A stretch of 63,785 bases of DNA, counting the filler, from Calcarisporiella thermophila CBS 279.70 (lineage: Eukaryota; Fungi; Calcarisporiellomycota): NCBI RefSeq assembly GCF_041956535.1. It is 8 parts of 8 records of this genome, joined end to end, with 100 filler letters (N's around TTAATTAATTAA, not from the genome) between each part and the next. Parts side by side here need not be neighbours in the genome. Positions count along the whole stretch, not along the records: positions 3,990 to 17,786 come from NW_027192210.1; 7 more parts are not named here. One strand, 5' to 3'. A program made the translations under genes and the position numbers. Under the pieces are notes generated by a model. The model did not search any database. It was given only the letters and a program-made list of their open reading frames with translations, and was not told the DNA's origin. Of this stretch, positions 4,035 to 17,786 are shown piece by piece; position 1 is the first letter of the stretch, and each line of letters opens with the position of its first letter.

Positions 4035-5636
4035 TTAAACTTTGCCCATAACGGAGCGATTACATGTAAGTTTTAGCAGGAATATAATTAAACCAGAAAG
4101 AAGAGTCATGAACCCGGAAAATAGAATTGAAGGCAAATAAGGATTGCTTAGAGAGGGTTTATGAAGTGCAGCGGCGATAGGAGTACCAACAAGGTTGCCA
4201 ACAAACGTAGAAGCGAACACCAAACCAAGTGCGCTTGGAAGATTTCCAATTCCTATGAGAGTAAAGGCATGTTAGGGCTCACTTTCTACCAAGATATATA
4301 TATAGTGAATGAATATAATTACCACTTAATTCTGCCGTCACCACTCCCACCAGTGTTACGAATCCTCCTCCGAAAAATCCATAAAATAATGAAAAGATAC
4401 ACATGGGGGCGAATGAGAATGAGAAATTCCAAATAAGGAGTATTGAGAGAGAGGAAAAAATTAAGCAAAAGCACATAACATTGATTCTTCCGAGGCGATC
4501 GGCAGCTAAACCTAGGACAATTCGCCCAACAGCATTGGCCCCATTCATGAGAGCAACAAACAACGAACCATTTTCTCTACCGAGCCCAATCGTAAACGAA
4601 AATTCTAATATTCGCAATTTTTAGTATGGTTAATTTCCATGATTGTAGTCAGAGCATAATCAACATACCAGGAGTCAGGTAAAATGGCACGACATATGCA
4701 AAGTACTCAATGGCGATGGCCACAATATATAGTGCAAGCTTTTTTTGCTTGAGTAGTGAAACGTCGACAGTGAACGGGCGAGCTTTATCCCTGACTACTC
4801 TTCCCTTAATCAAGATGGTGGCAGTGGCCAGCATAATAAACGCCATTATTCCTATAATGCGTAGCGTCCACCCGATTCCAATGACGGCAATTAATTTGCT
4901 CGTCACCGGGCTGAGAACTAGTCCTCCAATGCCTGTCCCACATACTGCAATGCCTGAAGCAAGGCCTCGGTGTTTTGTAAACCATTCAGGTATAGTTCCT
5001 ACCGATGGGAAGAAACTTAGTGAAGAGCCAAGTCCATACAAAACACCTTGAGTCAGGAAAAGTTGCCAAATCTGTGTGAGATTAGAGTAGAAGCGGTTCA
5101 AAGAATCAGAAGCTTTTCTCAATAAATAAAGAAGACTACCTGAGTAGAAAATGATGCTAGGATTAGGCCAAGTGGAAGAATGATTGTAGCAGCCGCCAGT
5201 AGGGTCCTGACACCAAAACGGTCCACCAACGGGCCATTTATAGGTCCACACACGACTACCAAAGCAGTGCCCACAGTTCCAATTAGGGATATTACCGATG
5301 GCGATGCTTGCCCTTTGAACTGAACATTTTGATAGTATTCTTCATAGACACCCCAGGTCAGACCATAGCCAAATATGACCCATTGACACAAGAATGCCCC
5401 GAGAACTACGAGCCAACTTGAATAAAATAGGATTAGCCAGTAATCAAAAAAGTGAGCTAACGACAGCTTATACCCTACCCATAACCTCCATCAGGTGCTT
5501 CCGTTGTAGTTGGAGTATTCTCGGCTATTCGATTTTCCTCAACAGTCGAGATATCTGTCTCTGGCTCTACCGAAGAATCACCGAGATTTCCATTTTGTTG
5601 CTTCTCTGAATCTTTGCTCCAGGTTTGGTGGCTCAT
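4035..5636 (-). CDS. MFS monocarboxylate (MCT/Mch-type) transporter, multi-exon
   Basis: Motifs GPLVDRFG, TQGVLYGLG, EWFTKHRGLASGIA, GRIVLGLAADRLGR; hydrophobic segments spread over spliced ORFs. Confidence 0.88.
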
Positions 5637-7028: not shown

Positions 7029-9454
7029 ATGTCAATTGTCCAGAATTATTCCATTAAGCATGAAAATGGACTGCCTTTCACCATTTATGAATGGAAAGAT
7101 TCCGAGACCGATGCGGTAGGATGGATTGCCATTGATGGCTCGACTCCTTCATCCGCCGGTGGCGGCTTATTCATGTCGGCCTCTGCGACTCTCATGGAAG
7201 TGTGTGATATTGCCAATACTATGAGCAACAAGATGTGCGTATCTCGAGTTAGGACGATTCGTGGTGCCAAGGGAGGAATTCGCTTCAACCACAATGACCC
7301 ACAGGCACGAAATGTTTTGAGGAGGTTTCTCCGTGATAACAGGCATATTCTAGAAAATTATTGGGGTACCGGTGCCGATCTAAACACAAACCACGAAGTC
7401 ATCGATGAGCTATGCCAGGAAGAAATTGGTATTCCCACTGCTCTCTATTCACTCTATAAATCCCAGGGTTTGGAACATGAAACTGAGGAACTGCGTAGGC
7501 CTCTTTCTTTCCAAGCCAACCCCTATCATAATCTAAGTGAAGCATCTGTCGGGTACGGTGCGGCCATATCGCTCCTAGAGATGCTCAAGCTCTACAACCA
7601 AGATCTGATTGGCCATGCCAAAGTAATAATTCAAGGTTTTGGTACGGTTGGCAGCACTTTTGCATATTATTTGCATACCCTTGGAATTGGACAAGTTGTC
7701 GGTATTACAAGCATTGATGGCATGTATATTGACGAAGAAATGGATATTATCCAGCTATTGGAAACTCGGCATAGTCGAGTTGGAGAAAGTTCTTACGATA
7801 ATACATCAATTGAGATTTGTTTGACTGAAGAGCAGCTTAATTCTGGGTGCTACAACAAGCGCTTAACTGATGAGGACAATGAGGCTTTCCTGAAACGGTA
7901 TATTAATTTGAATCCTATTTATTCGATAAATTTACTAATTTACAAAATTGTATTAAACTCTTCATTTAACATAGCTTTGTCAACAGCGTACAGGCTGATG
8001 TGTTTGCCCCTTGCGCTGGACGGTATTGCATGACCCAGGGGATCCTCGACACTTTAGTAAATTATACCTTTGCCGCTTCTTCAGGCTACCGTTTCATTGT
8101 AGCAGGGGCAAACAATATCTTTGGGAAATACGTAAACGGAATAGCTGAACGCGCTTCCAATGAGGAGCAAGCAAGGTTCTTAAGCATCTTGGCAGATAAT
8201 CGTATCCAAATGCTGCCTGAGTGGGTCTCGAATTCTGGAACATGTTCGCTATTCATGCTCACATCCACCCGGCGGTATGACAGCGATTCTGATGTCGTAA
8301 GCAAAATCCTTCAAGATATTAGCAAAGATATAACTCAATTTACATGGAATGCGGTACGAAACGAACTGCCATTGCACAATAAATCATCGCTCAAGCTATA
8401 CGACCTTTGCACCGATTATGCCAGCAAGATTCGCAGCTCACAGCTCACGGCTCCATCAAAGGATGTTCCTATTTCAACGCTGAAGCTCTCTACAATACAA
8501 CACTATCACCTCATTACTAAAGACTTGGATTCGTGCCTTCCATTCTACCGCGATAATTTCAATTGTACTCTGTACCACTTCACCAAGCCTATCGCCAACA
8601 TTGATAACGAGATCTTTTCGCGTCAGTGTATTGTCAAGTTTAATACAGAAAATGATCCATTCATTATTATCTCAGAGAGCCCAAATCGTCGTTTAGAGGA
8701 CTGTGGTATTGTGTATATGGCCTTCCATGTACAGGATACTATAACGGACGCTAGGAAGGAGCTGGAAAGAAACTCGTATGGTTACAAATACATCAGGCAG
8801 CATCCTTTGTGGAATACGGACGCAATTCTGATAGATCAGCAAGATAAAAATGGTTGCAACACCCTTCTATTGGCAAATAGCACCAAGCTCGATGATCTAG
8901 ACAACACTTGTGTCAGAGTGGAGAGACACGGTCAAGAATCATCGCTCCATGTTAAGGGTATGGATCACTATACTGCAATCGTCCGCGATGCTGATGCTGC
9001 ATTACGCTTCCATGTTGACTTTCTTGGTTACCGGCATATCGATACAAAGAAGCTCAATGTTGGTACAGCACCTGAGGGTGAATATGATATGATCAACTAT
9101 GTACTGGGAGTTCCGAGCGACGATAAGCGCGTTTTGGTTCTCACGGAAGGATTAACCAAGGAGAGTATCTTTTATAAACTTCTCGAGAAAAAGGGTCATT
9201 CCTACATTCACCATATTGCTCATGAGTTGGATAATCTCGAGAACGCCCTTGATCGAATCCGAAAGACAGCCTATCAGCCTACAATGGATAAAATCAAAAA
9301 CGATCTTGTGCTTGGTTTGAAGCAGATATTTATTAGTGACGAATTCCTCAACCATTTCGTTGAGCTTGTAGAACGCCCTACAGTAGTTAGCCATGGTACA
9401 TTTACCAATGACAATATTGCCGCCTTGGCTCGTAGTATGAACAAATACGTCTAG
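7029..9454 (+). CDS. Glu/Leu/Phe/Val dehydrogenase fused to tandem VOC (HPPD-like) domains, 782 aa; intron 7898-7974
   Basis: AGGG, GAKGGI, GTGADL, IQGFGTVG, then after splicing ADVFAPCAG, IVAGANN, PEWVSNSG; C-terminus has DHYTAIV, IHHIAH, LKQIF, VELVER, TFTNDNIAAL. Confidence 0.85.
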
Positions 9455-10054: not shown

Positions 10055-11104
10055 ATGGAGGAAAAAACATTCAACTCAATCACTTACAAAGTAAATGGTC
10101 GAATTGCTACTATTACACTTTCTCGGCCAGAAAACCTGAATGCTATTGACATTTTCATGGGTGATGAAATTGCCAAAGCAGTAGAGCTTGCAAATTATAA
10201 TGATGATGTACACTGTATAATTCTCACGGGAGAAGGACGCTCATTTTGCGCAGGCTATGACCTCAAAACTTTTGCCGAAGTGGGGGAATTTTCACAAGGA
10301 ATGCCATGGGATCCTACAATTGATTACCAATACATGTGGAGCAACACCAAAAACTTTATGAGTCTCTGGAAAAGTTACAAGCCGACCATCGCGAAAGTCC
10401 GTGGACATGCTATAGCAGGAGGAAGTGACATCGCATTATGTTGCGATTTGGTAGTGATGGCAGAAGATGCCAAGATAGGATATCCTCCGGCGTAAGTAAA
10501 TGCTAGTTAGAGCCAATCTATATTCGTTTCGAAACATAAGAAAGATTGAGCACAGTGATGTTTTGTAATTTTTACTAGGCGCGTTTGGGGATGCCCCACT
10601 ACGGCCATGTGGGTAGGTATTTGTACTATTATTGATTACCAGAGTGATGTTTATAAAAATGATCGCTACCTCAATAATTCTATTATATAACATCAGGTCT
10701 ATCGATTGGGAGCGGAAAAGGCAAAACGTATGCTCCTAACTGGTGATCTTATTACTGGTAGAGATGCAAAAGAAATGGGCTTGGTTATTGATGCCGTCCC
10801 CGAATCAGAGCTAGATGCATATGTTGAAAAGCTGGCTAACCGCATTGCAGCCGTTCCGCGTAATCAACTTTTAATGCAGAAAATGGTAATTAACCAGGCC
10901 ATTGAAACGAGTGGGATGGAGGCAACACAGCGATTGGCAACTATTTTTGATGGCGTGGCCAGACATACTCCCGAAGGTATTTGGTTCCGAAAACGCTCGG
11001 CCCAGGTTGGCTTTAAACAAGCCGTCCAGGAGAGAGACGGAGGTGAGCCAATTGCACCAGGAGTTGAGCATAAGACACTATGGGCTTTGAAAGCAATGCT
11101 TTAA
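10055..11104 (+). CDS. Enoyl-CoA hydratase/isomerase (crotonase) family, 3 exons
   Basis: ITLSRPENLNA, FCAGYDL, IAKVRGHAIAGG, DAKIGYPP, AKRMLLTGD. Confidence 0.9.
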
Positions 11105-13043: not shown

Positions 13044-14233
13044 ATGGATCAAAAGACTGTTGATCCTAAATTATGGAAAATTGCTCACGACGAGAAGGTA
13101 GCTGTATTTATCCTCGGTAAGTGCTTTTTAAAGATAACAACAACTCAATATTATTACTAGAGGATAATATTTAATATTTGTTATATCCCACTCTAAACTT
13201 TTTTTTTGCAAATAGGAATGATCTTTTCGATATTTATATTAAACATATATCTTTCTATTACGATGCTGCGAAAGTTTACTCAAACCGTATACTGGCTTTG
13301 TCTCCTTGCCAACTTAATGGGTCCTATACGTCTAATTGGGTTCCTAGTCCCTTATCTTGGACCCCCAGGTGGCAACTGCAGTTATGTATGCTATTTGACT
13401 AACGTTCCACATGAAATATCACTGGATGCTGTTACCGGCATCTTGTAAGTGATTTTGAAATATTTTCTATATTTTTATTCCATTTAACCAGATAAGTTTT
13501 TGTAATTATTTTAGAATGATAAAGGCATATGCATCCTATAATCGCCAACTATTCATCCCCATTATCACCGCATTTCTGATAGCTGGTTCAATCACGGCCC
13601 ATTTTCTTCACAATGCTCAAGCAGTATATGTAAAAAGCCCATTTGGCGGATGCTCTAATATCCCGTACATGCCTTATGTCATAATGTGGTTTGCGTTCAT
13701 CTGGGCCCAAAATGCTTTCCTTAATGTTATTTTTTGTATCAAGCTATTTTCAGTACGGAAAAATTCGATTTATCGCAGCCTTATCCGCGATGGAGTATTA
13801 TTTCTTCTTTTGCTCACGCTATCGAATATAATCACAATGATACTAATATACTTTCATGTACTCGGAGACGAATCGACCATACTATTTGACGTTGACTGTA
13901 AATTTACCTCTCATTGATGCATATACTGGATTAATAGCTAACATATTACATTTTTCTTCAGTAATTTTAGCCTGCAGTCTCATTACTTTACATCTCTGGA
14001 ACTGTGCATGCTTGCGATCTGAGAATTCCAGTTTTCAGAATATAAATAGTCATCCTCAAGAATCATTTAAAGACAGTCTTTCGCATGCAGCACCTTCAAA
14101 TTTTCAACCGAAAATTTTACCGAGGCAAGATCGTTCATTTCTACCAACAACGTATATTGATTCATTCGAATTAGATAATGGTCTGGAGTTGAATGGATGC
14201 TCAAACAATAGAGTGGAACGAATAACTTTATGA
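13044..14233 (+). CDS. Multi-pass membrane protein (GPCR-like fungal family), multi-exon
   Basis: Consecutive hydrophobic exons separated by GT..AG introns; SLIRDG motif before a TM helix; polar C-tail. Confidence 0.55.
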
Positions 14234-15484: not shown

Positions 15485-17786
15485 TTAAACAATAGCATAA
15501 TCATCATTGATAAGTCGTTCTATTGCAGGTCCTTCGTCACAAACTTGATGATATCCTTTAGAGTGCGGATACACTCTCTCTGCTCTTCTGACTCTAGTAA
15601 TATGGATATTCTCATCAAAGAAAATATCCATATTACTAGAGTCGATATAGACCATGACGTCTTCCTCCACAAAGCCATTCTCGATTCTCTGCTTCACATA
15701 AGATTTCGGGGTGTTGTTTTGAACTCTTGGAAATAGGAGGTGGATTCGTAGTATTCCTTTAAGTTCCACGGGTACCTTCGATTCTTCGAATTTTTGTCTG
15801 ATTCCCTTTAATTCTTCATGTTTGTCGGCCTTCTTACTTATAAAACTAAGGCGTATGTCACTTGACGAATCGTTTTCATTACATCTGTCCTTTGGTATGG
15901 AGGATGAGTAAAGTTTGATCGCTAGAGAGCCAGCATATTCTCTATCAAAGAACCATGCACCGTCCTGACGTGTTCCAGGTTGTTCTTCAAGCAGCTTATT
16001 AAGCGGTCGATTCACTAGAAAGTTGAGGTCGCCTTCCACGCCGCTGCCCAAACCATACCCCTCTGCTGCTTTGATTTCATCAATTTGAATCGTAAATTTG
16101 CTGCACCATCCAGGTAGATTTAACCATTTTAGAAATGGTAGATTCGAAAGCTGATATCCATTGAAATGTTGTAAAGAGCATCTTACTAGCGCCTCGAATG
16201 CGTTTCCATTAGTAGTCGAGTTCGCGCCCAGAAATTGAATAATTTTGTCCAGTTGTTGAAGGTGAGTAATGTATGATGCATCGATGCATTTATTTCGAAG
16301 TACCTCCTCTATAGCCTCAATAACCAATGGCTCATCCATGACCCAATGGAAGCTATTATTATCGCGGCGCAGGGCACATAAGTTGTTAACAAAGTCGCAC
16401 TCCGATTTGTATGGGAATGAAATCTTGCCACGATGAAGTTTGAATGCCATAACCATGCGACAAAGAAGAGGTATGATTTCCTTGTACTTTTCAATTTTGC
16501 TTTCAATTTCTGCAACTAGGTCCACTCTCAACTGTTGAATAGTCTGATTCATAGCTTTATCAATCAATTCTTGCTTGGATCCAGTACCAGAATCGCATAA
16601 AACAGAGAGCTCCTTAATGACTCTGGTTCCAAATCGAGCACGTCCACTGAGCTTCTGTCGCTTGGCATCGGCAATTACACAACCATCCAAGTTGAGAGTC
16701 CTTTTTAACATTTTCTCCACAGCCTCACCATCACCTGATGGGAAGTTGACAATATTTATTAAATTCTCAGGCTTACCGATCGCCGTATAGACATGCTCTG
16801 CATTGCCAAGAGATAGTGAGGTTCCAAGGACAATCAAAGTCGCGCGTATCCTGGAAACTGATGAGCACAAAGGTGTGAGAAAGCCACGGCGATATATACT
16901 CTTTAACATAAACTTGTTGTCCATTAGATCCTTCTCGCTCTTGTTGACTGCTGATGGTGCAATAAACCGACCTTTCAGGATGTATTCATCTGCTATATGC
17001 ACCTCATCTAATGCAATTGCGAGTCCTCTATTGCCGATCTTCTCCGCAATTATGTCCTGAACTCGTCGGAACATTGCTCGAATTGTGATGTTATCATACA
17101 CACGTAGTGCTTCCACTAGTTCTCCGATTGTTGATATTCCATTAGTAGTCTGCTCGCGGAAGAATTGTTCTGGTGAGAGGTCACTATTAATGTCGAAGAG
17201 CATCAACAGGAACAACAGGCGAGCTAGGAACTCTAGGTTGATACGATCTTCGATTAAGTCTTTCAGCGTGCTGTCCTTGGACAATACCTGATCAAATGAC
17301 TCTGGAGGCTTCTCATGTACCCTGCGATGAAAATCATAGGCTTCTTTCGCGAGATTGTCAAAATTTGGATCCTGAAATCCCGGTGGTTTGCGAGAGTGCG
17401 GATCAGAACATACAACGTACACAACAAAGTGATGTCTTGCCAAATCAACTACTGTGGCTGTTTTCCCTGATCCTGACCGAGCAATCAATGCTACAACGCA
17501 GTGGTCAGTTGACTTGCTAGCGTCGCCGTTAACAATATCAAGCAAAGTTTGAGGATTGTCTGAAGTTACTGTTGGTTCCATGTCCAACAACTTTCCGAGC
17601 ATTGGTAGGTTGATGTCTGCCGCTGTATGGCCATATGGTAAAATGGATTTATAGAAGCGGCCGAATATTTTCTTTTGACTCTGCTCGACGCTAGCATTAT
17701 CCACTATGTGAGCTTTGTGGCTCTTTTTCGATATGGAGATGATTTGGTTCAGTGTTGCAGTAATTCGGTCATGTTGAACGAATATT
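15485..17786 (-). CDS. Crinkler-like P-loop NTPase + PD-(D/E)XK nuclease protein (5' truncated by linker)
   Basis: Walker A ARSGSGKT, Walker B AIALDE, GNAFE helix, RQDG...SLAIK nuclease-like core; intronless; frame open up to the gap. Confidence 0.7.

Follow-up and report, generated by a model that had tools for sequence, protein, structure and literature searches.

The stretch of DNA analysed here (the window) comprises 63,785 nt, filler included, joined from eight parts of the Calcarisporiella thermophila CBS 279.70 genome, and all positions count along it. Two overlapping plus-strand open reading frames, 7029-8033 and 8000-9454, were found by sequence analysis to be one gene of 782 codons. 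The frames are bridged by a 77-nt phase-2 intron (7898-7974) with GT at 7898-7899, AG at 7973-7974, a branch-site match (TACTAAT) at 7933-7939 and a GC content of 18%, against 44% and 43% in the exons. Exon 1 (7029-7897, 869 nt) and exon 2 (1480 nt) join in frame. The sole full-length relative recovered by word search, the 784-residue Basidiobolus meristosporus orthologue P0001, contains the same four Pfam families and is colinear with both exons across the junction (67% identity over exon 1 and 47% over exon 2). Its own 50-nt intron 2, also in phase 2, lies in the same Arg codon. Splicing of the 77-nt intron is predicted on the basis of this conservation, and the single fused gene proposed in an earlier sequence-only reading of this DNA is confirmed. 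The gene is single-copy in the 28.2-Mb, 116-contig genome.

Exon 1 encodes the ELFV dimerisation/substrate domain and the first half of the NAD(P)-binding domain, as assigned from Pfam and from alignments to glutamate dehydrogenases (GDHs) in the PDB. Exon 2 continues with the rest of the NAD(P)-binding domain and the dehydrogenase C-terminal helices (7975 to about 8440; alignments and orthologue model), followed by a degenerate N-terminal VOC domain (approximately 8480-8926; weak family matches and a fold match) and a predicted catalytic VOC domain (8951-9454, stop codon at 9452-9454). The exons were searched separately, exon 1 matching the Pfam families ELFV_dehydrog and ELFV_dehydrog_N and exon 2 Glyoxalase, and the full-length structural model was made from the public orthologue P0001.

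Divergent from the fusion lies a multi-exon MFS transporter gene of the MCT type (MFS_1; minus strand, 4040-5636, ATG at 5636, 3' end approximate). Its best NCBIfam match was an L-lactate MFS model, below cut-off, and the Basidiobolus fusion has a divergent neighbour to which it is 53-63% identical. The divergent MFS gene was absent beside the fusion at four other fungal loci, and the fungal fusion neighbourhoods share nothing beyond this link between two genomes. The transporter is a candidate substrate importer or product exporter. A second MCT-type transporter (G000:C14:33333-33779) is 64% identical to the window copy; other paralogues are mostly below 50%. A functional link to the downstream intron-split enoyl-CoA hydratase gene (plus strand, 10055-11104; best NCBIfam match PRK08272) was considered and rejected, as the gene is not syntenic at four other fungal loci. 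Further along are a multi-exon gene for a hydrophobic membrane protein (plus strand, 13206-14233), with no Pfam match in the two exons scanned, and a 739-aa open reading frame (minus strand, 15485-17704) that has a P-loop and only a weak AAA_22 match and may resemble the Crinkler-like proteins of early-diverging fungi.

The claim that the two exons together complete a Glu/Leu/Phe/Val dehydrogenase was upheld. PF00208 scored above cut-off on exon 1 alone, PF02812 matched at E 4.5e-5, and residues 22-460 of the P0001 model (full-length pLDDT 88.3) matched GDH at Z 31 and LeuDH at Z 28. Mapping from the GDH alignment placed the MxxK Lys at 7221-7235, the GAKGG Lys at 7263-7277, the catalytic Asp (in GADLN) at 7362-7388 and GxGxxG at 7632-7652, all on the plus strand. 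No aligned fusion, and none of 26 stand-alone members, departs from the catalytic Lys, the carboxylate-binding Lys or the Asp, and GxGxxG is conserved. Fold, Lys/Lys/Asp and GxGxxG are thus shared with the Glu, Leu, Phe and Val (Trp) dehydrogenases, whereas the pocket differs. In both fusions and stand-alone members, GDH Lys89 and Ala163 are replaced by Gly, Val377 by Ala, Ser or Cys, and Ser380 by Phe or Tyr (C. symbiosum numbering); in the window the Ser380 position is a Phe within NSGTCSLF (plus strand, 8231-8254) and the Lys89 position a Gly. In GDH, Lys89 and Ser380 bind the gamma-carboxylate. NCBIfam GDH models gave 16-32 bits for exon 1 and at most 65 bits for the full-length fusion P0007, against cut-offs above 500, and no equivalog cut-off was reached. 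These data predict a functional dehydrogenase fold whose pocket is larger and non-polar, and an enzyme that is not a GDH.

The exon 1 search returned 43 proteins, 41 of which belong to one GDH-like subfamily (32-40% identity) from bacteria and Pandoraviruses. Unlike the known ELFV dehydrogenases, this is a separate, unnamed subfamily with a GGGLF motif, and bacteria, Pandoraviruses and fungi all have members. Where the second Rossmann strand ends, 25 of the 26 stand-alone members have Asp or Glu and 8 of 10 fungal rows have Ser, which hints weakly at altered cofactor use. Two Streptomyces loci (L006:8724-14232 and L007:8803-14244) carry the subfamily inside two glycosylated-metabolite clusters, between an FAD monooxygenase gene and an HpcH aldolase-like gene, a Trp halogenase and a flavin reductase; these surroundings hint at Trp or halo-Trp as a substrate of the subfamily. 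At a third locus (L008:2050-13300) the dehydrogenase comes first in a cluster with KS III, FabA-like, ACP, ThDP enzyme, methyltransferase and P450 genes.

A word search with the VOC domain alone found no relatives, but a profile search of 1.84 billion cluster representatives found 47 clusters at E <1e-30. The motifs named in the sequence-only reading were all located: DHYTA (8963-8977), HHIAH (9209-9223), LKQIF (9317-9331), VELVER (9359-9376) and TFTNDNIAAL (9398-9427). The three putative metal ligands, His6 (8966), His88 (9212) and Glu138 (9362), are each conserved in 55 of 55 aligned VOC members, as is Phe127 (9329), with Gln125 (9323) in 53, Arg142 (9374) in 54 and Asn155 (9413) in 51. The same reading had assigned two VOC domains with a His/His/Glu triad; the triad was found in the second domain, but the first is degenerate, with unconserved ligand columns and no triad, and hhalign gave only P=5.5% between it and the active domain. 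The first domain is modelled as a structural partner, as in HmaS and HPPD.

Structure comparison placed the C-terminal half nearest HmaS. Residues 462-784 of P0001 matched the whole HmaS chain at Z 25.2 over 283 aligned residues, the best structural match, followed by HPPDs (22.6-23.0), extradiol dioxygenases (19-21.5) and an epimerase (15.9). For the single catalytic domain (AlphaFold pLDDT 87.8, C-terminal helix 153-166), VIA-align ranked HmaS 2R5V best (Z 16.3, 158 aligned), with epimerases at 14.2-14.4 and 133-134 aligned. Foldseek by contrast listed methylmalonyl-CoA epimerase first by E-value, although query TM-scores were 0.71-0.73 for HmaS, AcmP1 and rice HPPD and 0.61-0.64 for epimerases. 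Also counting against an HmaS-type reading, hhalign favoured the genome's epimerase (97%) over its HPPD domain (72%), and identity to HmaS is 19-23%. A PDB sequence-profile search put HPPDs on top. With HmaS (2R5V; AcmP1, 7YVV) the protein shares the degenerate N-terminal domain, the His/His/Glu of the C-terminal domain and two HmaS/HPPD hallmarks, the Gln-x-Phe strand and the C-terminal helix with its Asn. It differs in identity, in pocket residues, in the fused ELFV dehydrogenase and in having no NRPS context. Domain order is not uniform across the family (L004:11359-12402 against window 8480-9451; P0061). In many prokaryotic members the active VOC domain precedes the degenerate one, a swap relative to the HmaS/HPPD order seen in the fungal fusions and in a protein of Mastigella eilhardi.

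Residue comparisons set the protein apart from each named family. With HPPD it shares the fold, the metal triad and the Leu427 position, and alignment of Gln125, Phe127, Arg142 and Asn155 indicates that the HPPD Glu394-Gln379-Asn423 network and Phe381 are kept (PMC6750108). The HPPD Ser267-Asn282-Gln307-Gln293 network is however wholly replaced (by Asn/Tyr, Thr, His and Ile/Val); mutants of these HPPD residues lose 12- to 3700-fold in efficiency (PMC6750108). HPPD has a long insertion after the second His and ahead of the Gln-x-Phe strand that is lacking here, and TIGR01263 (cut-off 277) was missed by all members, the best matching at E 4.7e-13 and the window domain not at all. The HmaS Ser201 position is Asn in 53 of 55 members and the Ile216 position Thr (HmaS numbering); the Ser201 register was taken from alignment A5, and Ser is also absent in the hhalign register, one residue off. 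From methylmalonyl-CoA epimerases, with which the core VOC fold and His..His..Glu are shared, the domain differs at the position of the catalytic Glu48 (Asn in 53/55) and at the fourth-ligand position, Gln65 (Val in 54/55), which would leave a three-ligand site with three open coordination sites. It also has a two-domain arrangement and 25 extra residues with a helix, where the epimerase chain of about 135 aa ends at the last ligand strand. Type I extradiol dioxygenases, compared by overall fold, gave family scores of at most 21 bits. The earlier judgement that the C-terminal half is HmaS/HPPD-like rather than epimerase-like thus holds, on the structure matches and the missing epimerase Glu and fourth ligand. 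A housekeeping role for the fusion as GDH, HPPD or epimerase was rejected, since the genome has its own elsewhere (two GDHs, two ordinary HPPDs and an epimerase). In a neighbouring family (P0126, P0146), single-domain HmaS-like VOC proteins are fused to chorismate mutase, a further link between this VOC branch and aromatic 2-oxo acids.

Gene context in prokaryotes links the VOC subfamily to two other enzymes. In a deltaproteobacterial and a Flammeovirgaceae MAG, the dehydrogenase gene, a VOC gene immediately after it (45% identity to the catalytic domain) and a gene for an FAD oxidase resembling cytokinin dehydrogenase (CKX) stand in that order. Across 55 prokaryotic loci, the oxidase lay within 4 kb in 29 of the 30 with enough flank and a deaminating enzyme was present in 25. 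When loci were grouped at 70% identity into 18 lineages, the oxidase occurred in 16 and a deaminating enzyme in 13 (L-amino acid oxidase, LAAO, in 6, HisC-type transaminase in 4, GDH-like in 2, Tyr-type transaminase in 1). No other neighbour recurred in more than two lineages, and no homogentisate-pathway, NRPS, carrier or Hmo gene recurred near the 55 loci. The enzymes are also fused into single chains, as LAAO-VOC-oxidase, transaminase-VOC-oxidase, VOC-oxidase and oxidase-VOC. This linkage across prokaryotic lineages is new, and the deaminating enzyme beside the VOC gene is of four interchangeable kinds. The strongest pointer to an amino-acid-derived 2-oxo acid as the VOC substrate is that three unrelated classes of 2-oxo-acid-making enzyme fill one slot. 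The closest characterised relatives of these partners act largely on aromatic amino acids. The HisC-type partners may be ordinary histidinol-phosphate transaminases; the one at L080 passes the hisC cut-off and is convergent.

The CKX-like oxidases (L004:12917-14347 and most loci of L009-L026 and L044-L080) have a plant CKX as best PDB match (E 7e-45). Two residues with roles in CKX, the His that is flavinylated and the TD-motif Asp, are kept. Their tight linkage or fusion to the VOC subfamily suggests a non-cytokinin function. Counting against a role as hydroxy-acid oxidase are the retained CKX-type residues, since CKX acts on amines and not on hydroxy acids. No close homologue was found in the C. 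thermophila genome, the best match being 33% identical over the FAD domain only.

Taken together, our results favour, if by no wide measure of confidence, an enzyme that converts a bulky, probably aromatic amino acid through its 2-oxo acid to a mandelate-type 2-hydroxy acid and CO2. The dehydrogenase would oxidatively deaminate a bulky uncharged L-amino acid with NAD(P)+, most likely an aromatic one (Phe, Trp or Tyr). The C-terminal VOC domain would then bind Fe(II) through His/His/Glu and chelate the 2-oxo acid, and O2 would drive decarboxylation and hydroxylation of the former C3 in the manner of HmaS and HglS, yielding a 2-hydroxy acid one carbon shorter and CO2. HmaS and HglS convert 2-oxo acids by such chemistry (PMC7286885, PMC3720870, PMC13109320), and as HmaS takes aromatic and some aliphatic 2-oxo acids (PMC3720870, PMC13109320), Leu or Met may also be a substrate. 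HglS/FLO7 (DUF1338), also a VOC enzyme using Fe(II) and O2, makes the (n-1) 2-hydroxy acid from a 2-oxo acid of amino-acid origin (PMC7286885). It matched at Z 10.8-11.8, no sequence similarity to it was found, and the pocket of the fused dehydrogenase is non-polar, not of a kind that suits a dicarboxylate. The same steps appear to be encoded in bacteria and archaea by separate or differently fused genes. There the CKX-like oxidase probably oxidises the hydroxy acid further, standing in for Hmo or D-2-hydroxyglutarate dehydrogenase; in this fungus no such partner was found, and the gene beside the fusion is instead the divergent MCT-type transporter. The layout parallels the HmaS, Hmo and HpgT module, likewise a deaminating enzyme, a VOC enzyme and a flavin oxidase (though Hmo uses FMN, and the partner here is FAD-dependent and CKX-like), and HglS followed by D-2-hydroxyglutarate dehydrogenase is similar. 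The two-step logic first proposed for this gene, from amino acid through 2-oxo acid to oxygenated product, is supported by the prokaryotic context and fusions, whereas homogentisate, one product then suggested, is unlikely as the HPPD Ser-Asn-Gln-Gln network is absent. The fusion would work like HmaS or HglS yet falls outside the HmaS, HPPD, epimerase and GDH families. The missing Ser201 and the lack of recurrent NRPS and Hmo genes make it less likely to be an HmaS, not less likely to work like one.

Other readings of the VOC half are unlikely. It may use Fe and O2 with another outcome (hydroxylation at a different site, by HPPD-type attack on the ring giving homogentisate or as in KIC-to-HMB conversion; an aldehyde from C2-C3 cleavage; or ring opening of the extradiol type), as the close structural scores of HPPDs and extradiol dioxygenases, the lead of HPPDs in the PDB profile search and a pocket unlike that of HmaS would allow; replacement of all four HPPD network residues, the two ordinary HPPD genes and the lack of recurrent homogentisate-pathway genes argue against this, and we give it a small chance. 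We rate just below it a non-oxidative, epimerase-like metalloenzyme: a tautomerase, racemase or lyase that would use Co, Mn or Zn in place of Fe and O2 and whose substrate would be the 2-oxo acid or a compound derived from it. The family stands apart from three epimerase rows in the tree and lacks the epimerase Glu and fourth ligand, Gln-x-Phe and the C-terminal helix are conserved here and absent from epimerases, and the genome already has a normal epimerase. Epimerases nonetheless lead the Foldseek ranking, an HH motif precedes the second ligand as it does in them, and TIGR03081 is the best NCBIfam match of all 55 members, with the window domain at 34 bits far under its cut-off of 115.

A biosynthetic direction is improbable. 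In this scheme an unlinked oxidase would convert the mandelate-type product of the VOC domain to the aryl-glyoxylate, which the dehydrogenase would aminate to an arylglycine for a secondary metabolite. The three-gene module does mirror HmaS, Hmo and HpgT, the Rossmann-strand Ser of the fungal fusions would fit, and the Fusarium copy lies among an AMP-binding enzyme and methyltransferases. The commonest prokaryotic partner, however, is the irreversible L-amino acid oxidase (6 of 13 lineages), NRPS and carrier genes do not recur, and the fungal neighbourhoods have in common only the two-genome MFS link. Least credible by far are two separate genes or an annotation artefact. The splicing prediction does rest on conservation, but the intron interrupts the Rossmann NAD(P)-binding domain, the dehydrogenase-VOC junction lies within the single open exon 2, Basidiobolus has the intron at the same position, and full-length intronless fusions exist (Fusarium, P0194).

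The dehydrogenase-VOC fusion is uncommon but not unique. It was also found in Trametopsis, Jaminaea, Fusarium sp. NRRL 66182 and several sequencing-run assemblies, and as fragments in Claviceps. The Basidiobolus and Fusarium fusion proteins are ORY00583.1 and KAF5025562.1. The ESM Atlas holds a 72-member cluster (789 aa), all eukaryotic and mostly Ascomycota, named only 'putative VOC domain-containing protein'; members come from Zoopagomycota, Basidiomycota and Ascomycota. This is a real gene of uncharacterised architecture: in the literature searched, which omits most subscription journals, no paper described the architecture, a fungal HmaS fusion or the bacterial and archaeal modules. This agrees with the suggestion that no characterised protein with this architecture is known, although the architecture itself is shared with that cluster. 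Papers on pyrroindomycin genes and GDH pocket mutants were likewise not found in the literature searched.

Quick trees with SH-aLRT support were made for both halves. Both bring together fusions from several fungal phyla. On the dehydrogenase side, nine fusions and their nearest neighbours, a Pandoravirus group, form one set (99) whose internal branching order the tree does not settle; this set is nested in the prokaryotic subfamily, a long way from true GDH. On the VOC side, support is 85 for the group of nine fusions and 92 for its pairing with the Mastigella protein as nearest neighbour, and both belong to a family (96) in which prokaryotes predominate. The stand-alone Pandoravirus members (L005:10001-11323; P0015, P0016, P0027) include one record annotated as GDH though the glutamate pocket is missing; a search of viral contigs gave no VOC relative, which suggests that Pandoraviruses have the dehydrogenase alone. 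Horizontal acquisition, proposed from the bacterial-type N-terminus, agrees with the prokaryotic type of both halves, but the event looks ancient, not recent, and is not specific to this genome. A recent transfer into it was rejected on the shared intron, an exon GC like that of the neighbours and the fungal grouping in both trees. The pattern fits a single old event of acquisition and fusion, with patchy loss afterwards; later transfer between fungi may also have occurred. The glycogen synthase of C. thermophila shares 67-85% identity with its Basidiobolus counterpart and the intron layouts of the two genes differ, so the two fungi are probably not close relatives.

To our knowledge, few VOC-fold enzymes oxygenate a 2-oxo acid on their own (HPPD, HmaS/HPDL and HglS). 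The present family would add a subfamily of this type whose pocket is distinct and whose three-enzyme context is conserved. More tentatively, and as a proposal that could well be wrong, deaminase, HmaS-like VOC enzyme and CKX-like 2-hydroxy acid oxidase may form an unrecognised amino-acid alpha-oxidation module in bacteria, archaea, an amoeba and fungi, possibly capable of repeated shortening. If so, some uncharacterised prokaryotic 'cytokinin dehydrogenases' would gain a function. Mandelate and benzoylformate have reportedly been proposed as intermediates between phenylalanine and benzaldehyde in fungi, with no enzyme named; under the same condition, the fungal fusion would provide a native mandelate-synthase route from phenylalanine. 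Engineers couple a deaminase to HmaS to convert amino acids to chiral hydroxy acids (PMC13109320), so a natural one-chain enzyme for this conversion would be useful. Cultured carriers include Flavobacterium amniphilum KYPY10, Hyalangium rubrum, Basidiobolus meristosporus CBS 931.73 and Fusarium sp. NRRL 66182.
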